Positions 1 through 57,922 of a stretch of DNA of 64,000 nucleotides are shown piece by piece. The stretch spans positions 412,237 to 476,236 of IMG/VR virus record IMGVR_UViG_3300032236_002285, one strand, 5' to 3'. Under the pieces are notes generated by a model. The model searched no databases and was not told the DNA's origin. It saw only the letters and a program-made list of their open reading frames with translations. How positions within the stretch are numbered: position 1 is the stretch's first letter; each line of letters opens with the position of its first letter. The position numbers were made by a program, and so were the translations under genes.

Positions 1-279
1 AAATTCTATTTCTTTTTGATTTATTATGTCTATATCCTCTGTCTCAAAAATAATTTCCCATTTTATTGAATCAAAGCCATATTTATTTATAGCATTTGTA
101 AGTTTTGTATTATAATATCGTGTACTATAAGAGTGTTTGATTTTTCTACTATCAAAGTCTTTACTTTTACCAATATAAACTTTACCATTTGGAAATTCTG
201 CTTTATATATAACAAACATAGATTATATATTAAACAAAGTGAACTCTTAGAACTATAATTAAAAAAACATAATAAATAG

Positions 280-1458
280 ATGCCAAAATTAATTTTAAAT
301 ACTATCGTTAAAGATGAATCACATTGTATTTTAACAATGTTAAAATCAGCTATACAAATATCAGATGCTATAGTTATAGCAGACACTGGTTCTACTGATG
401 GAACACAAGAAATAATTAGAAAATTTGGAGAGGAAAATAATATTCCAACATATGTCGTTGAAAGACCATTTGATGACTTTGAGAAAAGTAGAAATTTTGG
501 AATGGAGAAGGCAAGAGAAATTGTAAAAGAGTTAGGTTGGAATCCAAATGATTGTTGGACTTGGTGGTGTGATGCTGATGAAACTATTATAGTTGATTCA
601 AAGTTTGATAAAAAACAATTTGTTAATGACCTTTATATGATAAACACATACATAGGTCAAATGAAATATACAAGAAATACATTTGCTAGAGTTTCAAAAC
701 CTTTTAGGTTTTATGGTCCAATTCACGAGTTCATTGTTTGTGATGACCAAAACATCACATCTGGTTTAGCAACTGATATTCACGTTGATGTTAAGATGAT
801 TGGTGCTTCTTGGCAAGGTGATATCCCAACTAAATATAAGAACCACGCTTTTGTATTAGAAAAGTACATTGATGCTAATCGTCAAGATCCTCGTTGGATT
901 TTCTATACAGCTCAGTCATATCACGACTCTGCTTCTATTCCTGATAATAAAGAAGAAAATGAAGAAAGATTGCGTAGAGCAATGAAGTATTACAAAGAAC
1001 GTGTTAATAGACCGGATGGTTATGCTGAAGAGGTTTACTATTCACAGTTCCGTATTGGTACTATTATGCGTGCTATGGAAGAACCTTGGAACTTAACACA
1101 CCAAGAGTTATTGAAAGCTTATAATATGGATCCAATGAGAGGTGAATCTATTAAGATTATCATTGATTACTACTTACAAATGAATGAGTGGAATATGGCT
1201 TATTTATATTCTAAGTTTGCTAAATTAAACTTCCACGGTAAGAATCCTTATCCTAATAGATTATTATTTGTTGATGAAGCTCTTTATGTTTGGAAATTTG
1301 CTGAAGCTCACGCCGCTTCTTGTTTCTACACAGGTAGAATGGATGAGGCTAAAGCATCATTTACTGAGATAATGCAAATATCTAAAACAAGTCCTCAGTA
1401 CTTTACACCAGAAGATATGGCTAAGATCCAACAAAACGCACAATTCTTCTTAAAGTAA
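280..1458 (+). CDS. Glycosyltransferase family 2 with TPR-like helical C-terminus
   Basis: N-terminal LNTIVKDE..IVIADTGSTDGT and DADE motifs typical of GT-A/GT2; C-terminal helical repeats (WIFYTAQSY..A, YYSQFRIG, EAKASF). Confidence 0.85.
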   Translation: MPKLILNTIVKDESHCILTMLKSAIQISDAIVIADTGSTDGTQEIIRKFGEENNIPTYVVERPFDDFEKSRNFGMEKAREIVKELGWNPNDCWTWWCDADETIIVDSKFDKKQFVNDLYMINTYIGQMKYTRNTFARVSKPFRFYGPIHEFIVCDDQNITSGLATDIHVDVKMIGASWQGDIPTKYKNHAFVLEKYIDANRQDPRWIFYTAQSYHDSASIPDNKEENEERLRRAMKYYKERVNRPDGYAEEVYYSQFRIGTIMRAMEEPWNLTHQELLKAYNMDPMRGESIKIIIDYYLQMNEWNMAYLYSKFAKLNFHGKNPYPNRLLFVDEALYVWKFAEAHAASCFYTGRMDEAKASFTEIMQISKTSPQYFTPEDMAKIQQNAQFFLK

Positions 1459-7568: not shown

Positions 7569-8612
7569 ATGTCAGTTGGTACAAAATATGCTACAGCCTT
7601 TACGAATGGTGTTACAATTCCAGGTTTTACTAATATTGGTAAAGTTGCCATAGATACAAACCCAGGTGTCGGAGATTATACACTCGGTAACTTTGTTGGT
7701 GGTATAAATGGCTCATATGACTACACTTCATATATTATTATATCTGATACAACTACAGCTCTTATTGATAATAGAAGCACTGGTAATCACACGGGTTCGG
7801 CTTTACCTAATCAACCAACATTTTTTGCTTCTAAATTTAAAACTGATGAAAGTTTTTTAAGAATGGTTAATAGACTACCAGCAAGATCAGGTCAAACTGC
7901 TTTTACTGATCCTTTATTAGCTTCTTCCTGGCTTAGGTCAAATGGTTATTGGACTACTTATGTAACACCGGTACTATCATTAGATGCTGGTAACCCAGCA
8001 AGTTACCCAGGAACCGGAAATACATGGACTGATACTATTGGTGGTAAAACATTCAATTTATATAATGGCGTTGGTTACGATCCAAACAATGGTGGTAAGT
8101 TTTATTTTTATGCACCAGCGGGTCAATATGCTGAGTGTAATACAAGTTTACCTGATTTAAATACTTGGTCAGTTGGTGTTTGGCACTATTATACTGGTCA
8201 AAATATTGGTTCTGGTATGTGTATTGTAACTGAAGTTTACCCAGGAGTAAATAATAATATAAACTACTCTTTAGGAGATAACGATACTGGCGGTGATATA
8301 AGTGCAGGATTTTTTGATGGCGCTTGGAGAGTAAGTAATCCTTATAGTTTAACACCTAATAATTGGTATTATATCGTTGGTACCTATGATGGTAGTACAA
8401 TTAGTCTTTATGTTAATGGTAGTCTAGTACAATCAAATAATTATAATGGTTACCCAATATCATCCCAGGGTGGTATAAGATTAATGAGAAGATGGGATAA
8501 TCCTGATTATTGGGATGGTTATTTATCTACGGTTGATATTTATGATCAAGCATTAGATTCATCAAAGATATCATCTATCTTTAATTCAACTAAATCAAGA
8601 TTTGGTTTGTAA
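7569..8612 (+). CDS. LamG/concanavalin-A jelly-roll domain protein (virion/tail-associated)
   Basis: LSLDAGNPASYPGTGNTWTD, NNWYYIVGTYDG..ISLYVNG, IYDQAL motifs. Confidence 0.85.
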   Translation: MSVGTKYATAFTNGVTIPGFTNIGKVAIDTNPGVGDYTLGNFVGGINGSYDYTSYIIISDTTTALIDNRSTGNHTGSALPNQPTFFASKFKTDESFLRMVNRLPARSGQTAFTDPLLASSWLRSNGYWTTYVTPVLSLDAGNPASYPGTGNTWTDTIGGKTFNLYNGVGYDPNNGGKFYFYAPAGQYAECNTSLPDLNTWSVGVWHYYTGQNIGSGMCIVTEVYPGVNNNINYSLGDNDTGGDISAGFFDGAWRVSNPYSLTPNNWYYIVGTYDGSTISLYVNGSLVQSNNYNGYPISSQGGIRLMRRWDNPDYWDGYLSTVDIYDQALDSSKISSIFNSTKSRFGL

Positions 8613-49355: not shown

Positions 49356-49639
49356 TTTAATATTTTACTTATTTTACTATCTCTTGAATCTCTTAACTTA
49401 TAAAATTCTTTATATTCTTTTTTAGCAACTGATATTATTTCTTTAGCTTGTGTTTTAGTTGGGTTATCTGTTCTTGTGTTAGGTAAACCATCTACAAAAT
49501 CCCAATAGATTTCATCATTTAAGTAAACAATAGCTTTTAGATATGAACCACCCCATTTTGAACTGGTGTAATAAACATAATCTACTCGCCAAACATCCTC
49601 ATTACTTTGAAAGTAAAAACTTGACTTAATATGTTCCAT
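49352..49639 (-). CDS. Small protein, C-tag
   Basis: Ends RDSKISKILK. Confidence 0.7.
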   Translation of the reverse strand: MEHIKSSFYFQSNEDVWRVDYVYYTSSKWGGSYLKAIVYLNDEIYWDFVDGLPNTRTDNPTKTQAKEIISVAKKEYKEFYKLRDSRDSKISKILK

Positions 49640-49964
49640 TTAATATAGTATTAATTTTTTTATCTCTTAGAAAAGAAGCATAAGCCGACTTAAACAACGA
49701 CTCATGCCTAATCATAGAAAGTATTTCATCTTCACCAACATTACCAGGTATAGAATGAATTAACTCATTTATATTTGAAATCTTTAACTTAACATCATTA
49801 TACTCAAATAAAACAGCATCAAATTCAAAAGTAATATGATTATATAAAAATGACATTTCTAACATCATCTTTATTTGATCAGGTGAAAACTTATCATTGA
49901 ACTTACCATCAATGATATCTTGAAAACTATCCTTTATAAACTGATTTGTGTCATTTAATTTCAT
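49626..49964 (-). CDS. Small protein, C-tag
   Basis: RDKKINTIL near end. Confidence 0.7.
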   Translation of the reverse strand: MKLNDTNQFIKDSFQDIIDGKFNDKFSPDQIKMMLEMSFLYNHITFEFDAVLFEYNDVKLKISNINELIHSIPGNVGEDEILSMIRHESLFKSAYASFLRDKKINTILNGTY

Positions 49965-50500
49965 AATAGTGCTTTTAATTTAATTGTTCTTTGTAATTGA
50001 ATATCATGTGGATACTTCTTTGCTTCTTTCAATATTACTGAAGCAACCCACTCTTCTAATGTTACTGACTTACCTTTGATATCTAACATACCATCTTTAT
50101 AAGAATACCAGTAACCATAAGAATCATCTGATATCATATCTTTATGAATATCATTCATATAAACCGTTATCCAAGAATCACCAAAAATAAATCTTTGAGT
50201 AAATACCGTTTTATCCTTTCTTTTCAAAGATTTCATTGCCGTAACATTCAACTCTAGTGACCAATCATTAAACACCCGTTCAATATGCTTCAACATCACA
50301 GATGGTCTTTTACTAAGTATTAATGTCTTATCAACACGACCATCTACATAATGAACCACATGATATGAATCTTCATCCCACTTAGTTAAGTAATCACCTT
50401 CTACTGCACGACTAACCGTTTCAGTTGAAATTGTAGAAACTTCTTCAAGCCACTTGCGAAGCTGAATATCTCTTTGCGAATTATGTATTTGTAAATCCAT
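49961..50500 (-). CDS. Hypothetical protein, C-tag
   Basis: Ends RTIKLKALL. Confidence 0.7.
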   Translation of the reverse strand: MDLQIHNSQRDIQLRKWLEEVSTISTETVSRAVEGDYLTKWDEDSYHVVHYVDGRVDKTLILSKRPSVMLKHIERVFNDWSLELNVTAMKSLKRKDKTVFTQRFIFGDSWITVYMNDIHKDMISDDSYGYWYSYKDGMLDIKGKSVTLEEWVASVILKEAKKYPHDIQLQRTIKLKALL

Positions 50501-50889
50501 TATATTCCTATTTGTTCTAATTTTTTATTTCTTAACCACTCATTATATAATGATTCAAATGCTTCATCATCCCATTGAAAACCAAAGATATAAGTTGAAC
50601 CACCACACCATCTTGACCAAACATCATAAAATAAATTCCAAGATTTAAATAACTTTTCTAATGACTCAGCTTCTTCCCTTGTAGTGTATAATTGAAAACC
50701 TGACTCAGATAAGTACATCATTAAAACATCAATCTTATGTGAACGGTTGCTCCAGTTTTCTAAGTACCACTCACCTTTCAAGTCTTTAACTTGTTGCTTT
50801 ATCTCAGGTAAATGATGGTCACAATATCCCTTTGTAACAATATCAAATACCTCAAAAGGTTTTAGTTTCCTAATTATACGCCAACTCAT
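50500..50889 (-). CDS. Hypothetical protein, C-tag
   Basis: Ends RNKKLEQIGI. Confidence 0.7.
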   Translation of the reverse strand: MSWRIIRKLKPFEVFDIVTKGYCDHHLPEIKQQVKDLKGEWYLENWSNRSHKIDVLMMYLSESGFQLYTTREEAESLEKLFKSWNLFYDVWSRWCGGSTYIFGFQWDDEAFESLYNEWLRNKKLEQIGI

Positions 50890-51158
50890 ATTCCTAACTT
50901 ATTTAGTTTTAAATCTCTTTCACCAGCCAAATCCACAAAACACTCAATTGGTACAAACTCTTCATGAAAGTAATAAGGACCTTTTAACTTAACACATATT
51001 CTATCCGGAAAATGAAAATCAACATCAGTTACTTTATATTTTTCACCTATGATTAAACGCTCATTATCATAATCACCACCTATATAACCAATAGAATAAG
51101 AATTTAACTTAACACAAGTTAAAATATCACCTATTTTGAAATCTTTATATGTTTTCAT
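50886..51158 (-). CDS. SH3-like small protein, C-tag
   Basis: IGDILTCV..LIIGEKYKV; ends RDLKLNKLGI. Confidence 0.7.
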   Translation of the reverse strand: MKTYKDFKIGDILTCVKLNSYSIGYIGGDYDNERLIIGEKYKVTDVDFHFPDRICVKLKGPYYFHEEFVPIECFVDLAGERDLKLNKLGI

Positions 51159-51544
51159 ATACCTAACTCACTTAATATTTTATCACGCTTAATCGCTTCA
51201 TCTGAATCAAAGTAAATATCACCACGAAGATAAAACTCCATCGTCTCAGTATAGTTTTGACCATGTTGTGATGAACGAAACTGAACCGTTAACCTCTTTG
51301 CTTTAGCAACCAAATCTGGACAATCCAATATCTTTGATTTTAACTGCTCACGAATATCCTTTTTAACCCAATTCATCAACTCATGTGTTAAACACGAACC
51401 GTTCATTGTACTGCGCTCAACTTCTTCATAAGCATCCTGATATCGTGTAGGTAATCTAAACTCTAAAGTATCAACCTGCCAAAACATCCACCAATACTTG
51501 CGGTAAACCGCATAACCCTTATTATGTTTTTTAATATAACCCAT
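51155..51544 (-). CDS. Hypothetical protein, C-tag
   Basis: Ends RDKILSELGI. Confidence 0.7.
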   Translation of the reverse strand: MGYIKKHNKGYAVYRKYWWMFWQVDTLEFRLPTRYQDAYEEVERSTMNGSCLTHELMNWVKKDIREQLKSKILDCPDLVAKAKRLTVQFRSSQHGQNYTETMEFYLRGDIYFDSDEAIKRDKILSELGI

Positions 51545-52043
51545 CTAATATCTTATTTAAAACATTATCTCTTCTTAAAGCAACATAGTCAAAGTATTCA
51601 TCTACCAAGCGAACCGTATAAACAAAACACGGCTTACCTAAACTATTACCACCTTTACCTTTAGCAGCACCTAATCTATACAATTCATCATCAGATAATA
51701 AACAAAATGAATTAATTTGACTATCTGAACAAAGGCATTGAAAGTAAGGCATATCTATCTTCTTGGTATATAAATCATGAAATTCTTTAGTAGTTTTATA
51801 ACCAGGTATCACCTCATGTAAAGTTTCTTCAGTATAACCCTTACGAATCCACTCAATTGAATTACAAACCAATCCATTGTAATACCAATACTTATCATAA
51901 TCAGTAATAATCTGAGTTGATTTAAAAACAATTTTACCAAGATACTCTTGACCAGGTATAAGTATCTCACCCCAATGAGCCGCCATTGATTTCTTACACT
52001 TCAATGTCAAAGATTCTCCTAATTTTGTTTTTTCTAAGTTCAT
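51531..52043 (-). CDS. Hypothetical protein, C-tag (start uncertain)
   Basis: LKCKK..LIPGQEY; RDNVLNKIL near end. Confidence 0.65.
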   Translation of the reverse strand: MNLEKTKLGESLTLKCKKSMAAHWGEILIPGQEYLGKIVFKSTQIITDYDKYWYYNGLVCNSIEWIRKGYTEETLHEVIPGYKTTKEFHDLYTKKIDMPYFQCLCSDSQINSFCLLSDDELYRLGAAKGKGGNSLGKPCFVYTVRLVDEYFDYVALRRDNVLNKILDGLY

Positions 52044-52116
52044 TTCTCAAAGTTTTAATTGTTTGCCTCATAGCACGAGCAAACGTTTCATCAGCTAATC
52101 CATTCATCCAACTCAT
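51994..52116 (-). CDS. 40-aa C-tag protein (not in ORF track)
   Basis: MSWMNGLADETF...LRKNKIRRIFDIEV*; ATGA-coupled to the ACP-like gene. Confidence 0.5.
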   Translation of the reverse strand: MSWMNGLADETFARAMRQTIKTLRNELRKNKIRRIFDIEV

Positions 52117-52403
52117 AAACCCAACTCTTCTATTTTCTTATTACGAAGATACGATTTAAATACCATCGGCTTTTTATTTCCTCCAATAAAAGCATCCACC
52201 ACTTCATCTGGAATAACAATGTCTAATCTTTTCTCTAGCTCCATTGCCAACTCAACACAATCTAAATCATCATAACCATTATCATTCCAAGTTTTATTCA
52301 TATCTAATGGATAACCTATCTTTTCATTAGCAACCTCCATCAAAATCTCTGGAGTTACCTTAACTATATCTGGACACTTTTCGATCATTTCTAATTCTGT
52401 CAT
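52113..52403 (-). CDS. Acyl carrier protein-like protein lacking the pantetheine serine, C-tag
   Basis: GYDDLDCVELAMELEKRLDIVIPDE versus ACP GxDSLDxVELxMxxE..F.IxIPDE; ends RNKKIEELGL. Confidence 0.8.
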   Translation of the reverse strand: MTELEMIEKCPDIVKVTPEILMEVANEKIGYPLDMNKTWNDNGYDDLDCVELAMELEKRLDIVIPDEVVDAFIGGNKKPMVFKSYLRNKKIEELGL

Positions 52404-52777
52404 AGTATTTGCTTTAATTTTTTATCTCTTATTTCTTGTAATAGTGAAGGTATATACTGACCCCACTTTATATAAATCTTCATCTTTTCAGCATCCCAAT
52501 CAAAATCATCAATTGATTTATAACTATTTTTGCCATATACCGCCGTGTGATGATTAATCAACATATCAATACACTCATTCATAAACACCTGACGAATTCC
52601 AATATCCGATATCTCACCAGCCCAATCTGTTAACTGCTTATGAAATTCAGACCACTCATTTAACTTTCTCATTCGCTTACTATGTTGACGGGTTTCTTTA
52701 AAGAATCTCCAAACTATTCCAACAATTACAAACAAAAACACTAAAAATAATGCCGCTTGTATAATCTTAAATATCAT
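52400..52777 (-). CDS. N-terminal TM protein, C-tag
   Basis: Ends RDKKLKQIL. Confidence 0.7.
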   Translation of the reverse strand: MIFKIIQAALFLVFLFVIVGIVWRFFKETRQHSKRMRKLNEWSEFHKQLTDWAGEISDIGIRQVFMNECIDMLINHHTAVYGKNSYKSIDDFDWDAEKMKIYIKWGQYIPSLLQEIRDKKLKQIL

Positions 52778-53067
52778 ATACCTAACTTATTTAACTTTTC
52801 TTGACGATTTATTAATTTAGTAATATCAACCAAATACCCTTTAGTAAAACAACCAGCAATAGTTAACCTAACACTCGTCATTTTATCCCAATCTATTGTA
52901 AATTCAGCATCATACTCTACCTTACCAAACACCACCTTAGGACCTTTATCTGAATACATATGAATAGTAATAATATCACCAATATCAAAATGATGATAAT
53001 AATGAACATCAGTATCTAAACAGATACTAACACCACCCTTCATTACTTCTAAATAATAAACCGTCAT
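52774..53067 (-). CDS. Small protein, C-tag
   Basis: Probable start ATG 53067, 6 nt after TATCTTTG; ends RQEKLNKLGI. Confidence 0.7.
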   Translation of the reverse strand: MTVYYLEVMKGGVSICLDTDVHYYHHFDIGDIITIHMYSDKGPKVVFGKVEYDAEFTIDWDKMTSVRLTIAGCFTKGYLVDITKLINRQEKLNKLGI

Positions 53068-53073
53068 AAAACA

Positions 53074-53105
53074 CAAAGATACGAATAATATTTTAAAAAA
53101 ACAAA
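53074..53105 (-). promoter_or_regulatory. Bacteroidota sigma70 promoter
   Basis: TTTG-N20-TATCTTTG. Confidence 0.7.
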
Positions 53106-53112
53106 AATCAAT

Positions 53113-53331
53113 CTATTGATTGATCTTCTTACACTTTTTAAGTAAAACATTAATAGTTTTTACCACATCACCTCCAAAACTTAACCTACAGAATTTATAA
53201 ATATGTCCTTCACGATTACGATAATATATCCTATCTACTTGACATATAATATCACTGCCATAATAATTATCACCGCAAGTAACCTTATCACCTACTTTTA
53301 TATCACTACTTAAAAAATTAAACCATTTCAT
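53113..53331 (-). CDS. Small hypothetical (SH3/KOW-like) protein
   Basis: IKVGDKVTC. Confidence 0.55.
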   Translation of the reverse strand: MKWFNFLSSDIKVGDKVTCGDNYYGSDIICQVDRIYYRNREGHIYKFCRLSFGGDVVKTINVLLKKCKKINQ

Positions 53332-53447
53332 ACTAACTCTTATTTATATTATACTTTTTAATTATTACGATGTTTTTAGTTTAAAAATTTTTTCTTTTCG
53401 AGTTTACGAGTTTAAAAATTTTCCAGGAATCTCCACCCACCACAACA

Positions 53448-53672
53448 TTAAACCCTACTCAACCTATCTCGCAACCTTTTCATAGCTTCTATACGAAAAT
53501 AAACACTATCCGCCCAACGATTAACCAAATCATCAACATCACCACGACCACAATAATATAAATTATTCATAATAGTCATATCATACCTATACTTAAATAT
53601 ATTCATCTCTAAAACACGAATACGATGGTCCAAAATAGCTACCTTCATTTTATTAGATATACTTACACACAT
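53448..53672 (-). CDS. Hypothetical protein
   Basis: 74 aa; upstream TAATATATA at 53677-53685. Confidence 0.5.
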   Translation of the reverse strand: MCVSISNKMKVAILDHRIRVLEMNIFKYRYDMTIMNNLYYCGRGDVDDLVNRWADSVYFRIEAMKRLRDRLSRV

Positions 53673-53763
53673 AAGTTATATATTAATAACATATTATTAA
53701 CAATGATAAATTTTACTTATTTTTTATAATAAAACAAATAAATAACAAATTCATATAAACACT

Positions 53764-54024
53764 ATGATAGAACACTTTAAACTAACAGATATAAATATAC
53801 AATCAAACGAAGGTAAATTACTAATGGCAGCAGTAGCCATTCTTACCTCTATCGATCATAAACATATCATCTCAGGTAGATGGGGTGGCACAATAACACC
53901 AGATACAGCAGTTAAACAAATAACAGAACTATCTAACAAAATCTACTACGAAGAAGAATACAAAGCAGAACAACAAAGAATCGAAAGAGATAATAAAATT
54001 AATAAGATACTAAGAAATGAGTAA
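53764..54024 (+). CDS. Small protein, C-tag
   Basis: RDNKINKIL near end. Confidence 0.7.
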   Translation: MIEHFKLTDINIQSNEGKLLMAAVAILTSIDHKHIISGRWGGTITPDTAVKQITELSNKIYYEEEYKAEQQRIERDNKINKILRNE

Positions 54025-54406
54025 TTTAACTAACAGGTCAGCGTGGCACGGTGCTGGTATTGCACAAATAACAGGGTCTCAAGGCTCTATAGGAATAACA
54101 GGCGCTAAAGGTACACCAGGTAACCAATTCCAAATAGAAGAACTTGAAGAACTACAAAAAAAGTATCATAACCGCTTTATCATTAGAATAGAATACGATG
54201 ATGTAGACTTATCTCCTACTAACCTAATAAAAGATACTCACGAAGTGAGAGTGTCTAAAGACACTACTACTACCAATAGAGAATATAAGCTCATACCTAA
54301 AAGTATTTCTAATATAGTAAACGAAACAGATAAATTCATACAAACTCTAATAGTAATGATTAGAGATGAAAAATTAGACAAAATCATCAATGGCAGAAAA
54401 AGTTAA
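54017..54406 (+). CDS. Protein with short Gly-X-Y run, C-tag
   Basis: GSQ-GSI-GIT-GAK-GTP-GNQ; RDEKLDKII near end. Confidence 0.7.
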   Translation: MSNLTNRSAWHGAGIAQITGSQGSIGITGAKGTPGNQFQIEELEELQKKYHNRFIIRIEYDDVDLSPTNLIKDTHEVRVSKDTTTTNREYKLIPKSISNIVNETDKFIQTLIVMIRDEKLDKIINGRKS

Positions 54407-54629
54407 AAAAATAGGTTGGGAAAAAGCTTCACTATTTAATAAGAACTTCGATAAAATATACGACTTCTGGAAAAAGAAAGCCGAAGACGAATATAACTAC
54501 TACGATGACCTGAAACTAATCAAAGAACATAATAAAGTAATTATCTATATTATAATAGATGATATTGACCAATACACAGAACGTGAAGAATGGCATAATG
54601 ACCCAGATGACCCAGAAACAATAATATAA
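54390..54629 (+). CDS. Hypothetical protein
   Basis: 79-aa ORF coupled to the upstream gene. Confidence 0.6.
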   Translation: MAEKVKKIGWEKASLFNKNFDKIYDFWKKKAEDEYNYYDDLKLIKEHNKVIIYIIIDDIDQYTEREEWHNDPDDPETII

Positions 54630-54632
54630 GAT

Positions 54633-54821
54633 ATGGTAAGAGTACCTTGTTATAACTGCGGAATAGGAATTGATTTAGAACCAATCGGGATTCGGTCGGG
54701 TTATGATACCTTATGTAAAGAATGTAAATGCCATATAGAATCAGATAAAAGAGATAAGAAGTTAGACAAACTATTGAAAAGAAATATATGGCAACGAATA
54801 AAACAACTTATAAAAATATAA
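54633..54821 (+). CDS. Zn-ribbon protein, C-tag + amphipathic tail
   Basis: CYNC..CKEC; RDKKLDKLL-KRNIWQRIKQLIKI. Confidence 0.65.
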   Translation: MVRVPCYNCGIGIDLEPIGIRSGYDTLCKECKCHIESDKRDKKLDKLLKRNIWQRIKQLIKI

Positions 54822-54976
54822 ACGGGGTTTATAAATTAAAGATAATAGTATGTAATAATTGCGGTACTATCATGGATGGTGAAGTTAGTTCTTGTACCGT
54901 ATGCAGAGATGCGAAATTGGGTAAATTACTGAAAAGGTCTATTTGGAGGAAAATTAGAGATTTTGTTAGATTATAA
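54788..54976 (+). CDS. Zn-ribbon paralog, C-tag + amphipathic tail
   Basis: CNNC..CTVC; RDAKLGKLL-KRSIWRKIRDFVRL. Confidence 0.6.
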   Translation: MATNKTTYKNINGVYKLKIIVCNNCGTIMDGEVSSCTVCRDAKLGKLLKRSIWRKIRDFVRL

Positions 54977-54982
54977 AAACAT

Positions 54983-55009
54983 TACAGAAAAGTGCTACGT
55001 TTTTCTGTA
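54983..55009 (+). repeat. 27-bp imperfect palindrome, copy 1
   Basis: tacagaaaa-gtgctacgt-ttttctgta. Confidence 0.85.
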
Positions 55010-55231
55010 GAATTTTGTGTTGATCCTATTCACGCTTATCAGCATCTACCGAAACCTTCTACTCTGTACTGATCCGTATATACAAGCACCTCTGAAAGCC
55101 GCACCCCCATTACGTTTCCGAGGTGTCATTTTTTCACAAAAAATCGATGTTAATTTGGCCTTACCACAAAGGTTTTCAGCGGCCGAATGACGATTTGACA
55201 AAACCAAATAAAGTTGTCCACATATTACATA

Positions 55232-55258
55232 TACAGAAATTTGCTGCGTTTTTCTGTA
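55232..55258 (+). repeat. 27-bp imperfect palindrome, copy 2
   Basis: tacagaaat-ttgctgcgt-ttttctgta. Confidence 0.85.
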
Positions 55259-55263
55259 GTCAA

Positions 55264-55290
55264 TTATATACCTAATGACTCTAATTTATC
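55264..55290 (-). pseudogene. Orphan C-tag-coding remnant
   Basis: GAT AAA TTA GAG TCA TTA GGT ATA TAA (DKLESLGI*) directly after the stop of 55289..55534. Confidence 0.6.
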
Positions 55291-55534
55291 ATATACCTAA
55301 TGATTTTAGTTTTTTATCACGACTTTCGTCTAAGTTTAATTCTGTATCGCGCCAGTGAGCGTATAAACTCTTAGTTTGTAATTGCTTTTTAGAACATCTT
55401 TTACATATTCGGAATAAGGTATGCTGCTGCCAACGGTAGGTTGAGCTGTTTTGCTTTTTTACCACAAGAGAGCCAAAAGAATCGCGATCTGTAAAGTATC
55501 GCCAGTTGTGGCCTATTATTTTACAAAGTATCAT
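55289..55534 (-). CDS. DUF1660-like small protein, C-tag
   Basis: CKIIGHNW..CKRC; ends RDKKLKSLGI. Confidence 0.7.
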   Translation of the reverse strand: MILCKIIGHNWRYFTDRDSFGSLVVKKQNSSTYRWQQHTLFRICKRCSKKQLQTKSLYAHWRDTELNLDESRDKKLKSLGI

Positions 55535-55665
55535 ATTCCTAAATTTCTTAGTTTCTGCTGTCCTACTGGTGATGTAGCATCTTCATTTACATCACCATAG
55601 AATGTTATAAAGATAAAGATAAAAAGTGGGTCTACAAAATTATGTAGCGTTTTTCTGTAACTACT
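55531..55665 (-). pseudogene. Start-less frame ending in C-tag
   Basis: ...SPVGQQKLRNLGI*; no ATG/GTG/TTG in frame; 5' part overlaps palindrome copy 3. Confidence 0.45.
55633..55659 (+). repeat. 27-bp imperfect palindrome, copy 3
   Basis: tacaaaatt-atgtagcgt-ttttctgta. Confidence 0.8.
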
Positions 55666-55882
55666 TTAGAATAGAATCTATCTTTGTTTCTCGCCATTTG
55701 TCTAATGGGGTTAGTATCCTTTCAATTGTGTTTAAGTGTAGTGTTGTTACCCGTTTATTTTCGGTGGTGAATATATCACGGTATGCACCGCCTAGTGATA
55801 GTGGTGTTTTTATTATATAGATGTTACCTTTTTGGAAGGTGATATCGTGTAGAGTAAAGGTTTTTATACAGATGTATTTCAT
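55661..55882 (-). CDS. SH3-like small protein, C-tag
   Basis: MKYICIK..FQKGNIYI; ends RETKIDSILK. Confidence 0.7.
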   Translation of the reverse strand: MKYICIKTFTLHDITFQKGNIYIIKTPLSLGGAYRDIFTTENKRVTTLHLNTIERILTPLDKWRETKIDSILK

Positions 55883-55903
55883 ACTTTTTCGAGTATTACA
55901 TAT

Positions 55904-55930
55904 TACAGAAAAGTGCCGCGGATTTCTGTA
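55904..55930 (+). repeat. 27-bp imperfect palindrome, copy 4
   Basis: tacagaaaa-gtgccgcgg-atttctgta. Confidence 0.85.
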
Positions 55931-55935
55931 GTTTA

Positions 55936-56274
55936 TTAGAATAATATTACTGGTGGTTGGTTATTTAAGTAAAGTGCATAGGTGAATAAGCAAATTGTGG
56001 TTATAAGCCATATCCACCAAGATTTTTTTGTCATAAATCTGTTTTCGGATTGAACTTCTTTGTTTTTAGCGAACAAGAGTAGATATAGATATGCTTTGAT
56101 AGTTGATGATATCAGTATAAGTATTAAGATTAATGTTTTTAATTCAAATCCTATCATTTTAGAATTAGGTCCAAACTTCAGTGAATTAAAACTTAACAAA
56201 TTAGTTGTTCTGCTTATGATAAATAGCATGGCAAATCCGATAATGAATGCTATTAGTTTGTGTGATGCTTTCAT
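55936..56274 (-). CDS. Three-TM membrane protein
   Basis: Three hydrophobic helices; TAACTTTG upstream. Confidence 0.7.
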   Translation of the reverse strand: MKASHKLIAFIIGFAMLFIISRTTNLLSFNSLKFGPNSKMIGFELKTLILILILISSTIKAYLYLLLFAKNKEVQSENRFMTKKSWWIWLITTICLFTYALYLNNQPPVILF

Positions 56275-56353
56275 AGTTTTGTTTTAAGCAAAGTTACTAT
56301 AATATAAAATAACTACCAAAATCATATGTAATCTAGCGTGTGTATTTCATACT

Positions 56354-56692
56354 TTATAATGATTCAATCTTAGCAATTACTTTATCTCTACGTTTGATAG
56401 CTGATTCGTTTTTATCACCGGTAGAGTTGTTAGACCAGAATGTATTGAAGTCAAATCTTACATAGAAGTTGTAGTTATCATTACCTGAGATACCACCTGA
56501 ACGAGCATTATAAGATTTAGGGAATTTGGCTTTATAAGCTTCAGCTTCGTCTTTTGTTTCAAAGTAAGCGGTAATACTTCTTACTTCATTAGCATCTCCA
56601 ATATCATTTACAGATGTTAATAAAGGTAGGGCGTAGTAGCCACTGGTATCTGTAGGGTTTTTATAATCTAGACGGTGAACAAGTAGTTTCAT
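56354..56692 (-). CDS. Hypothetical protein
   Basis: 112 aa; promoter TTTG-N19-TATCTTTG at 56709-56739. Confidence 0.7.
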   Translation of the reverse strand: MKLLVHRLDYKNPTDTSGYYALPLLTSVNDIGDANEVRSITAYFETKDEAEAYKAKFPKSYNARSGGISGNDNYNFYVRFDFNTFWSNNSTGDKNESAIKRRDKVIAKIESL

Positions 56693-56748
56693 AGTGTAGT
56701 GATTTATACAAAGATATGAAATATTACTAACAAAACAAAATTGTGAGG

Positions 56749-57306
56749 TTAAATGTTATTATATCCCTCAACGGATTCTACTGGTGGTTTTCCAATCTCT
56801 TGTAGGAAATCGTTTAATCTATCGATGATTATCTCATCATCATGTATAATATCATAATCATTAAACAATTCTATATAATCTTTATTATAGAATAATAGCC
56901 AAATGTCACTAACTGGGTTATTATAAAGGTAAATATCACCAACAACCACCTTTGGAAAATGTTCTAACGATGTTAATTTATTATTTTTACAACTAAAATA
57001 ACCACCAACGGATTCAGGACAATCTTCCAAAGATGTTAATTGATTATAAGAACAATTAAAATTACCACCAACGTATTTAGGAGCACCTTCCAAAGATATT
57101 AGTTTATTATCAATACAATTAAAATCACCAGTAACCTTTCTAAACTTTAATGGTAGCTTTGCTAATCCTTTATTTTCTAAATCAACATTACCATCAACAT
57201 CAATCGAACCATCTTCGTTAATAGTATAATCTTCTATACCACAAATTTTACATATATCATCAATGTCATTTTCAATAAATGATTCATATAGTTTTAAGTA
57301 TTTCAT
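56749..57306 (-). CDS. LRR protein paralog A with CTS-like leader
   Basis: Probable start ATG 57306 (MKYLKLYESFIE); about 22-aa repeats VGGxFxCxxNxLTSLExxP. Confidence 0.85.
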   Translation of the reverse strand: MKYLKLYESFIENDIDDICKICGIEDYTINEDGSIDVDGNVDLENKGLAKLPLKFRKVTGDFNCIDNKLISLEGAPKYVGGNFNCSYNQLTSLEDCPESVGGYFSCKNNKLTSLEHFPKVVVGDIYLYNNPVSDIWLLFYNKDYIELFNDYDIIHDDEIIIDRLNDFLQEIGKPPVESVEGYNNI

Positions 57307-57310
57307 TATC

Positions 57311-57922
57311 TTATATATTATTATATCCTTCAACGGATTTCACTGGTGGCTTACCAATCTCTTGTAAGAACTCATTTAATCTATCAATGATAATGCTATT
57401 ACCACGAATAACATCGTAATCGTTGAGTAATTCAATCTTATCTTTATCCTTGAATAATTGCCAAATATTATCAACCGGATTATCATAAAGGTAAATATCA
57501 CCACCAACCTGTGGGAAATGTTCTAAAGATCTTAATTGATTATTACAACAATTAAAATAACCACTAACTGATCTAGGAGAACCAACCAAACTAGTTAATT
57601 GATTATGACTACAATCAAAACGATCACCTACCGATTCAGGACAACCTTGCAAACTAGTTAATCTATTGAAAGAGCAATAAAAACTACCACCAACATATTG
57701 AGGAGAACCCTCTAATGATGTTAATTGATTATTAGAACAATAAAAAGTACCAGTAACCTTACCGAACTTTAGTGGTAGCTTTTTTAATCCTTTATTATTT
57801 AAATTAACATTACCATCGACATCAATAGATCCATCCGAGTTTATAGTATAGTTTTTTATACCATACTTTTTACAGATAGCATCAATTTCATTAAATGATT
57901 CATATAGTTTTAAGTATTTCAC
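57311..57922 (-). CDS. LRR protein paralog B with CTS-like leader
   Basis: GTG start, MKYLKLYESFNE; one more repeat than paralog A; near-identical caps. Confidence 0.85.
   Translation of the reverse strand: MKYLKLYESFNEIDAICKKYGIKNYTINSDGSIDVDGNVNLNNKGLKKLPLKFGKVTGTFYCSNNQLTSLEGSPQYVGGSFYCSFNRLTSLQGCPESVGDRFDCSHNQLTSLVGSPRSVSGYFNCCNNQLRSLEHFPQVGGDIYLYDNPVDNIWQLFKDKDKIELLNDYDVIRGNSIIIDRLNEFLQEIGKPPVKSVEGYNNI

Follow-up and report, generated by a model that had tools for sequence, protein, structure and literature searches.

While the replication origins of huge phages are essentially unmapped and their hosts are mostly uncultured, a local reversal of strand composition in one phage genome of more than 630 kb raised the question of whether a start site for DNA synthesis could be recognised from sequence alone. 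The reversal lies in a 64,000-nucleotide stretch (positions 412,237 to 476,236 of the 476-kb record IMGVR_UViG_3300032236_002285), hereafter the window, in whose coordinates all positions are given. The initial annotation had noted by eye that the + strand is A/C-rich left of about 54.6 kb and G/T-rich right of about 55.3 kb regardless of gene direction, that the switch coincides with a non-coding gap and a cluster of palindromes, and that the bias fades within a few kb. It was read as the signature of a bidirectional origin, with joined termini of a linear genome or a recent inversion or acquisition as alternatives. Therefore, we asked whether the reversal is real, what it is attached to, and which of these readings the sequence supports.

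Silent codon positions reverse their strand bias at one site

The raw composition of the + strand was examined first. The GC skew is -0.33 to -0.60 over 50.0-53.8 kb, about 0 with an AT skew of +0.3 over the plus-strand genes at 53.8-54.6 kb, and +0.23 to +0.28 with an AT skew of -0.06 to -0.21 over 55.6-56.2 kb. At third codon positions, minus-strand genes 49626-53672 have a coding-strand GC3 skew of +0.43 to +0.90, against a genome mean of +0.05, while plus-strand genes 53764-54629 have -0.38 to -0.47 and minus-strand ORFs 55289-56692 have -0.25 to -0.79. It had been set beforehand that the reading would fail if third positions showed no sign change or if amino-acid composition explained it. 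With expectations taken per codon family, the + strand is C-rich in every one of 14 consecutive genes on both strands from 49626 to 54629 and G-rich from 54788 to 56692 (z +1.5 to +4.9), indicating that the sign change is independent of gene direction and of amino-acid content.

We next considered two-fold codon families, where only transitions count. Against a baseline of C/(C+T)=0.217 and G/(G+A)=0.186, left-zone minus genes give 0.081 and 0.389, left-zone plus genes give 0.452 and 0.084, and right-zone minus genes give 0.475 and 0.138, showing that both kinds of transition are asymmetric and that the ratios change in mirror image on the two strands. C/(C+T) in minus-strand genes falls from about 0.22 to 0.04 approaching the site, jumps to 0.48 just beyond it and returns to baseline after 56.7 kb. 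The gradient towards the core is monotonic in genes of one orientation, with C/(C+T) falling from 0.27 to 0.04 and G/(G+A) rising from 0.22 to 0.46. Among about 600 gene boundaries of the 476-kb record, this is the strongest origin-like contrast (19.5 against 6.5 for the next at k=5). Genome-wide, neighbouring genes on opposite strands have anticorrelated coding-strand bias (r=-0.29), which shows that a strand-based process acts in this phage.

The bias is local. It declines leftwards over 5-15 kb, and right of 56.7 kb there is no net bias to at least 83 kb, including the 19 kb beyond the window end; it does not persist along a whole replichore. Thus the reversal described in the initial annotation is confirmed, and is stronger than could be seen by eye. 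One correction is required: the two small plus-strand genes next to the gap (54633-54976) carry almost no bias, so the sign change lies between 54.63 and 55.29 kb.

The reversal sits on a conserved non-coding core bracketed by palindromes

The features of the locus are listed in Table 1. The non-coding gap and the palindrome cluster were both confirmed: TACAGAAA-N11-TTTCTGTA occurs three times in 476 kb, all here, against 0.01 expected in the window, and there is a fourth degenerate copy. Related loci carry labels beginning with L (metagenomic contigs, of which L104 and L105 are also treated as strains), and X2 denotes a further strain.

Table 1. Features of the reversal locus, in window coordinates.
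Coordinates	Strand	Feature	Observations
49626..54629		Left zone, 11 minus-strand and 3 plus-strand genes	Silent sites make the + strand A/C-rich (the - strand G/T-rich) and the bias grows towards 54.6 kb; per-gene plus-strand zGC -1.2 to -5.4 in all 14 genes; same pattern in L106, L117, L124 and L104
54633..54976	+	Two paralogous 62-aa zinc-ribbon genes (CxxC...CxxC with a basic C-terminal helix)	Almost no bias (plus-strand zGC +0.1 and +1.5); the first is conserved next to the core in 7 loci; only weak Pfam hints, such as RecR_ZnF at E 0.02
54977..55258		Conserved non-coding core bracketed by the 27-bp palindromes h1 and h2; the sign change of the strand bias lies here	74-83% identical in 9 metagenomic loci, with long invariant blocks; best-conserved part 54977-55165; GC 0.37-0.43 against 0.30 for the genome
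54983..55009		Palindrome h1 (TACAGAAAAGTGCTACGTTTTTCTGTA)	Looks like a terminator for the plus-strand operon 53764-54976; stem of 13 pairs, loop of 3 nt; tail AATTTTGTGT invariant in relatives; inner stem pair varies as C-G, T.G and T-A between loci
55232..55258		Palindrome h2, right edge of the core and a recombination point	L104/L105 colinear with the window up to 55258, then continue as after h3, joining h2 to the right half of h3; X2 diverges at 55245 and rejoins at 56304
55259..55660	-	Gene cassette with ORF 55289-55534 (81 aa, DUF1660-like), ending in the degenerate palindrome h3 (55633-55659)	Present in the window, absent in L104 and L105 (blastn joint); DUF1660 at E 7e-4, phrog_2670 at E 7e-5; 25-nt direct repeats at 55263-55312 and 55530-55554
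55661..55882	-	Cassette ORF, 73 aa	Coding strand A/C-rich; homologues in L106, in two copies
55904..55930		Palindrome h4, the inverted form of h2	Just 3' of ORF 55936-56274; in L106, h4 is the exact reverse complement of h2; shared flank TATTACATAT
55936..56274	-	Cassette ORF, 112 aa, predicted membrane protein	Largely missing in L106; replaced in X2
56354..56692	-	Conserved 112-aa gene, last gene of the G/T-rich right zone in the window	Plus-strand zGC +4.9; phrog_7216 at E 7e-7; homologues close the variable zone in L106, L117, L125 and L108

To find relatives, several searches were made. Megablast and tblastn against deposited phages gave no match, and single-protein scans of viral contigs with two neighbouring genes gave no relatives. 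A loose palindrome pattern gave 102 scattered single hits in viral contigs, but none has the refined loop and they are chance matches. An exact 20-mer of the core gave no hit in viral or metagenome contigs. The degenerate palindrome consensus then found 21 metagenome contigs.

Nine related metagenomic contigs carry the same core and the same flip, although their right-hand genes differ. Counted by protein family across these loci, 9/10 left plus genes and 28/29 left minus genes are negative, and 34/37 right minus genes are positive. Plus-strand genes on the right follow the rule only weakly (6 of 10 families, mainly through G over C), and in L104 and L105 the 696-aa plus-strand gene right of the core has the opposite bias (z -6.1). 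Hairpins without the core, in other contigs (L118, L120, L123 and L115), show no flip.

These comparisons bear on two of the alternatives. A recent inversion or acquisition is refuted, because the flip is present in relatives only 74-90% identical in DNA, whose right-hand zone holds different genes and is 1.7 to 5.3 kb long. More generally, three sets of genes with different codon preferences, through selection, expression class or foreign origin, could happen to lie side by side; the right-zone ORFs do score as atypical with a codon model trained on the genome, and the zone is rich in accessory genes. However, one switch point explains five groups of genes, unrelated genes in the same position in nine relatives share the bias (85 protein families), and the gradient with distance is smooth. 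This gene-class reading is close to refuted and we consider it very unlikely.

Other identities for the core were also examined. Frames are open on both strands, but substitutions show no 3-base periodicity (22/46, 20/47 and 24/46), and a coding reading was rejected. Searches of the window and of the core for tRNAs and Rfam families found nothing, and the covariation term over 10 sequences is -1.0 on the + strand and +1.1 on the - strand, giving no convincing support for a structured RNA on either strand.

Joined ends, transcription and breakage as alternative causes

If the core were where the ends of linear virion DNA meet in the assembly, end-initiated strand displacement would be expected (by inference) to give the observed sign, and many short metagenomic contigs do end within 150-550 bp of a palindrome. 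However, contig breaks near the site are expected anyway because strains differ there, and at least ten independent assemblies from several studies run straight through it with the flanks joined in the same way. The site is internal in a 481-kb JGI contig and in a 472-kb ENA scaffold (at about 305 kb), and a search for terminal repeats between the two ends of the record found none. Ends resected 5' to 3' would give the opposite sign; on this inference the resected-end and pac-site models were rejected. On the evidence of assembled contigs, joined termini or a packaging start are therefore not supported, and we regard this reading as improbable.

Very strong transcription leaving the core in both directions, with R-loops exposing the non-template strand, could also produce a bias. 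The sign fits the minus-strand genes on the left and some plus-strand genes on the right, and in most relatives the core ends in a near-consensus TTGACA-N18-TATAAT that points rightwards out of it. However, about half of the genes contradict this explanation: the plus-strand operons left of the core (3-7 genes per locus) and the many minus-strand genes on the right carry the bias opposite to the one their own transcription would give. Moreover, the switch is not at the divergent promoter gap (53673-53763) but 1.2 kb further on, at a convergent gap, and no leftward promoter was found in the core. A transcription footprint is therefore unlikely.

A third possibility is a hypothetical site-specific cut at or near the palindromes, made by a homing or hairpin nuclease and repaired again and again by recombination-dependent synthesis. 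The nascent strands running away from the break would stay single-stranded, as in break-induced replication, giving the same footprint without a classical origin. The locus is a hot spot of cassette gain and loss with break points in the palindromes, L117 carries an HNH endonuclease gene between the palindromes right of the core (Pfam HNH, E 2e-8), and the phage has a RecA/UvsX-like recombinase. Against this, family searches detected no nuclease gene in the zone in the window itself, and by inference the 3' tails left by 5'-3' resection would add the opposite sign next to the break. We consider this explanation unlikely, although it ranks first among the alternatives.

A candidate zone of divergent DNA synthesis

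Taken together, the results partly support the origin interpretation of the initial annotation, as a mutational footprint. The sign is the one expected at a start point of divergent DNA synthesis, in genes of both orientations on the left and in minus-strand genes on both sides. The explanation we favour, with moderate confidence, is that the core marks a fixed zone where DNA synthesis starts and moves away in both directions. In this view, the strand that would be displaced, or would serve as lagging-strand template, is the - strand on the left and the + strand on the right, and it has lost C and A and gained T and G at silent sites, as deamination of single-stranded DNA produces (C to U, and A to hypoxanthine). 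The link between single-strandedness and gradients of C>T plus A>G is established for mitochondria (PMC3269015). Because the bias is 5-10 times the genome-scale one and decays over 2-15 kb, either synthesis would begin by strand displacement, with an R-loop or D-loop start as at T4 origins and a displaced strand that stays single-stranded for a few kb, or forks from here would soon be met by forks started elsewhere by recombination. The analysis itself establishes the bias with its sign, gradient, uniqueness and conservation, the non-coding nature of the core and the cassette break points, whereas replication activity at the site, replication-type single-strandedness as the cause, and the kind of initiation are inferred.

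Several properties of the locus fit an origin less well. No initiator family was detected in the neighbouring ORFs, and no iterons or AT-rich unwinding element were found: the only repeats are the four palindromes, and the core is the most GC-rich stretch nearby. A conserved zinc-ribbon gene lies beside it. The site lies between convergent genes, so forks leaving it would meet transcription head-on. Polarised substitutions between the window and its 98% relative L104, with an outgroup, gave only 53 sites, too few to show an ongoing asymmetry.

Discussion

Skew is a marker of replication origins in bacteria, plasmids and some double-stranded DNA viruses (reviewed in PMC3269016). As in those systems, the sign of the GC and AT skew at silent sites changes here at one point whatever the gene direction, with G and T in excess on the strand that leads away from it; here, however, the bias is local and far stronger than the genome-scale bias of the same phage. 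At the phage T4 origins oriF (uvsY) and oriG (gene 34), a promoter transcript forms an R-loop that primes the leading strand. The phage studied here encodes a T4-style replication set (family B polymerase, DnaB-like helicase, RecA/UvsX-like recombinase and clamp-loader-like protein), and its small non-coding element holds a promoter-like site in most relatives, a possible source of a primer transcript. Recombination-started forks elsewhere could explain why the influence of the origin is short-ranged. There is no sequence similarity to the T4 origins, an R-loop remains hypothetical, and T4 origins are not known to carry such a compositional footprint.

In magnitude, the bias resembles the strand asymmetry that strand-displacement replication leaves in animal mitochondrial DNA (PMC3269015, PMC2939890). 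The four-fold GC skew is shifted by about 0.6, both C>T and A>G types are asymmetric, and there is a gradient with distance from the start point, although here it spans a few kb on both sides of one site in a large double-stranded DNA genome and not a whole genome.

The palindromes look like terminators (at least h1 does) and are also the points at which small accessory gene cassettes are swapped between strains. In this they recall the PeSL (promoter-early stem-loop) motifs of T4-like phages, which bound and shuffle small genes in hyperplastic regions (PMC2839356, PMC4122927): conserved stem-loops sit between small variable ORFs, and indels and replacements between close strains end within the motif. 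However, the sequence is unrelated, the four copies lie at a single locus of the 476-kb record rather than dispersed over several regions, no promoter consensus is attached, and the genome's own promoter-like motif T(A/T)ATATATA(C/T) is not part of the palindrome. PeSLs are not linked to a strand-bias flip.

In summary, we describe a sequence footprint that can be placed within about 650 bp, is unique in the record and is conserved across a lineage of freshwater phages, and which gives a concrete candidate start site for testing. More tentatively, displaced strands that stay single-stranded for kilobases would create a standing, mitochondrial-strength mutational gradient on both sides of a fixed initiation zone, steadily rewriting the codons, and even the amino acids, of the accessory genes shuffled into this hyperplastic locus. 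If so, this would be the first replication start of a phage of more than 600 kb to be located from sequence alone, and a new example of how the mode of replication sculpts local gene evolution. The locus also shows that strand-specific mutation pressure can be intense and local in a double-stranded DNA phage, strong enough to shift first and second codon positions of small accessory genes. That matters for gene calling, since a codon model trained on the genome rejected the real genes here, for dating gene transfers, and for understanding how hyperplastic regions evolve.

Genome context

The window is the last 64 kb of an IMG/VR virus record of 476,236 bp with about 30% G+C, which encodes a large terminase, a family B DNA polymerase, a DnaB-like helicase, a RecA/UvsX-like recombinase, a clamp-loader-like protein and 53 tRNAs. 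Most of the genes in the window are small ORFans. The record is not the whole genome and is probably not a provirus. Its JGI parent contig is 481,145 bp and overlaps by 123 nt with a second JGI contig of 155,228 bp, and an ENA scaffold of 471,672 bp, 100% identical to the window over the 11 kb compared, bridges the two (contigs L128, L129, L132 and L133). The phage genome is therefore at least about 636 kb, and the feature under study lies well inside it. The 4.9 kb trimmed from the parent contig holds RNase H and type IX secretion-tail genes rather than obvious host DNA, while the record itself starts inside a long, highly repetitive Ser/Gly-coding repeat, the likely reason that the assembly broke there. 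Several phage genes encode secreted proteins with type IX secretion sorting domains (CHU_C, Por_Secre_tail), which by inference points to a Bacteroidota host.

A motif, T(A/T)ATATATA(C/T), is strongly enriched between genes of the record (TAATATATA: 109 of 143 copies are intergenic). It lies 0-9 or 20-29 nt upstream of co-oriented gene starts, so it is probably the main promoter element of this phage.

Silent-site strand bias changes sign at a non-coding gap

The initial annotation had claimed, from the sequence alone, that the compositional skew of the plus strand inverts locally near 54.6-55.3 kb. To test this, genes were called with a simple codon-score and length method and third-position composition was measured. 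The coding-strand GC3 skew departed strongly from the genome mean of +0.05, with opposite signs in minus-strand genes on the two sides of the gap. To remove amino-acid effects, each gene was compared with the genome-wide third-base frequencies of each codon family. The plus strand is C-rich in all 14 genes from 49626 to 54629 and G-rich from 54788 to 56692, with the matching A/T shifts.

In two-fold codon families only transitions can matter. Against a baseline of C/(C+T)=0.217 and G/(G+A)=0.186, the respective values are 0.081 and 0.389 in left-zone minus-strand genes, 0.452 and 0.084 in left-zone plus-strand genes, and 0.475 and 0.138 in right-zone minus-strand genes. Taking minus-strand genes only, C/(C+T) falls stepwise from 0.27 at 22-27 kb to 0.04 at 52.4-53.7 kb, while G/(G+A) rises from 0.22 to 0.46; the right-zone values apply just right of the gap, and from 56.7 kb onwards both ratios are back near baseline. 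Of about 600 gene boundaries in the record, this one has by far the largest origin-type contrast (19.5 against 6.5 for the next). Neither of the outcomes named beforehand as fatal to the claim, absence of a sign change at third positions or an amino-acid artefact, was found, and the observation made in the initial annotation is confirmed. One refinement is needed: because the two small plus-strand genes beside the gap carry almost no bias, the change of sign lies between 54.63 and 55.29 kb.

The bias reflects a strand-based rather than a gene-based process. Across the record, neighbouring genes on opposite strands have anticorrelated coding-strand bias (r=-0.29, n=167), and neighbours on the same strand are positively correlated (r=+0.24). 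There is also a genome-scale domain, outside the window, in which silent sites make the plus strand G/T-rich in genes of both orientations (z 6 to 15). It ends abruptly near 163.7 kb, and the ENA scaffold begins close to that boundary, at about 162.5 kb of the record. There is no net bias from 165 to 445 kb and a weak opposite bias from 445 to 462 kb. Per informative site, the local bias at the switch is 5-10 times stronger than in the genome-scale domain.

Anatomy of the switch

The gap holds a non-coding core bracketed by two copies (h1 and h2) of a 27-bp palindrome, TACAGAAA-N11-TTTCTGTA. A third copy and a degenerate one (h3) follow to the right, and the exact palindrome occurs nowhere else in 476 kb. 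Palindrome h1 follows the stop codon of the plus-strand operon and looks like an intrinsic terminator, with 13 pairs, a 3-nt loop and a T-rich tail. The other three palindromes each lie just 3' of a small minus-strand ORF. The first of these ORFs weakly matches DUF1660 and phrog_2670, so these minus-strand ORFs are genes even though a codon model trained on the genome rejected them.

Coordinates of features at and around the strand-bias switch (window positions unless another sequence is named)
Feature	Position	Strand	Observation
Left-zone minus-strand genes	49626-53672	-	Coding-strand GC3 skew +0.43 to +0.90
Blocks of small genes	49716-51079 and 51686-52778		Absent from the 98% identical strains L104 and L105; the left zone is also hyperplastic
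Left-zone plus-strand genes	53764-54629	+	Coding-strand GC3 skew -0.38 to -0.47
Two small genes	54633-54976	+	Almost no bias; the first (54633-54821) encodes a conserved zinc-ribbon protein
Gap with non-coding core	54977-55288		Core bracketed by h1 and h2
Palindrome h1	54983		Terminator-like
Motifs within the core	55076-55083 and 55090-55124		Invariant GTATATAC preceded by a GATC site; internal palindrome TCTGAAAG-N-CGTTTC(C/A)GA, with arms resembling the flanking palindromes, around a conserved C-run (GCACCCC)
Palindrome h2	55232		Second copy
25-nt direct repeat	55263-55312 and 55530-55554		In tandem just after h2 and again over the start codon of ORF 55289-55534; looks like the vestigial ribosome-binding and start region of a lost cassette
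Right-zone ORFs	55289-56692	-	Coding-strand GC3 skew -0.25 to -0.79
Small ORF	55289-55534	-	Weak DUF1660 and phrog_2670 matches
Palindrome h3	55633		Degenerate copy
Small ORF	55661-55882	-	
Palindrome, third copy	55904		
Small ORF	55936-56274	-	
Segment missing in L104 and L105	55259-55660		Absent exactly; h2 is joined to the right half of h3
Divergent segment in run X2	55245 and 56304		Strain diverges at the first position and rejoins at the second
Tandem paralogues	56749-57306 and 57311-57922		About 78% identical in DNA, leucine-rich-repeat-like segments, no local strand bias; pieces have very high summed depth in other lake metagenomes, so this is a widespread repeat domain
T(A/T)ATATATA(C/T) motif	57933 and 59074	-	Copies within the window
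Ser/Gly-coding repeat	Record 1-300		Start of the record
G/T-rich domain	Record 1-165000		Genes of both orientations
Type IX sorting-domain genes	L104 11585-13675; record near 236, 250, 255 and 323 kb; L128 7529-8461		CHU_C, Por_Secre_tail
HNH endonuclease ORF in L117	L117 7153-8232		Runs through one of the palindromes (7711-7737); may be two genes or a read-through

Conservation of the core and of the flip

A word-based protein search with the gene at 54017-54406, followed by look-ups of the encoding contigs, gave two strains 98% identical to the window (L104 and L105) and a 79-90% relative (L106). A metagenome scan with the palindrome consensus gave 21 more contigs, nine of which hold h1 and the core. 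The core is conserved at 74-83% with long invariant blocks. Its substitutions show no 3-base periodicity, so it is not coding; it has no Rfam match and no convincing covariation on either strand. In most relatives it ends in TTGACA-N18-TATAAT pointing right. The inner stem of the palindrome varies as C-G, T.G and T-A, and two contigs have a perfect 12-bp stem with a 3-nt loop, which fits a real hairpin or cruciform.

The flip is conserved and depends on position. In L106 all 30 genes left of the core, 26 on the minus strand and 4 on the plus strand, have a C-rich plus strand, and 28 of them are A/C-rich on the combined index. To the right, 12 of 15 genes over 5.3 kb make the plus strand G/T-rich, including genes with no homologue in the window and one plus-strand gene. 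The same holds in the metagenomic contigs L117, L111/L127, L125, L110, L121, L108 and L124. We then counted once per protein family, using 85 families from nine loci within -8 to +6 kb. Left plus-strand genes are negative in 9 of 10 families and left minus-strand genes in 28 of 29, whereas right minus-strand genes are positive in 34 of 37 families and right plus-strand genes in 6 of 10. Pooled four-fold sites show GC-skew shifts of about 0.4-0.7 on both sides. Contigs that carry the palindrome but not the core (L118, L120, L123 and L115) show no flip. There is one exception: in L104 and L105 a 696-aa plus-strand gene with a type IX secretion sorting domain sits right of the core and has the opposite bias (z -6.1), which looks like a recent arrival. 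The initial annotation had listed a recent inversion or acquisition as an alternative cause of the flip; this is excluded by the conservation in diverged relatives with different gene content.

The locus is also a hot spot for gene cassettes. In addition to the strain differences at the palindromes (see table), L106 and L117 carry 5 kb of other small genes between the core and a conserved 112-aa gene, against 1.1 kb in the window, and these include an HNH endonuclease, an NlpC/P60 peptidase and a sugar epimerase. This behaviour is like that of the PeSL motifs of T4-like phages (PMC2839356, PMC4122927), although here the motif has only four copies at one locus and no attached promoter was shown.

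Interpretation of the switch

The sign of the bias fits any process in which synthesis leaves the core in both directions. Left of the core the minus strand would be the lagging-strand template or displaced strand, and right of the core the plus strand would be. The exposed strand has lost C and A and gained T and G, as deamination of single-stranded DNA predicts (PMC3269015 for mitochondria; PMC3269016 for origins).

Transcription alone does not fit these data. The switch is not at the divergent promoter gap at 53.7 kb but at a convergent gap, and the plus-strand operon left of the core and the minus-strand genes right of it carry the bias opposite to their own transcription. The initial annotation had also offered the joined termini of a linear genome as an alternative. 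Joined ends do not fit the assemblies, which cross the site in ten or more cases and place it internally in two contigs longer than 470 kb; resected ends would also, by inference, give the opposite sign.

Taken together, the interpretation proposed in the initial annotation is partly supported: the origin reading is supported as a mutational footprint but not as a demonstrated function, the reading as joined ends is unsupported, and the reading as a recent rearrangement is refuted. While the bias, its position and its conservation come directly from the sequence comparisons, initiation of replication at the core and the manner in which it would proceed are inferred. No initiator, iterons or AT-rich unwinding element was found, the public runs, represented only by contigs, gave no copy-number peak or read ends, and polarised substitutions were too few to be informative. 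A break-induced start at the palindromes is a close variant that cannot be excluded.

The strength of the bias and its short range suggest one of two things. Either the start proceeds by strand displacement, of R-loop or D-loop type, and leaves kilobases single-stranded, or there is an origin whose forks are soon met by recombination-started forks. We infer that the second is plausible for a phage with a T4-like replication and recombination gene set. While origin-type flips of strand bias are themselves a known kind of signal, the one described here is local, very strong and conserved at a palindrome-flanked non-coding element in a phage of more than 630 kb.
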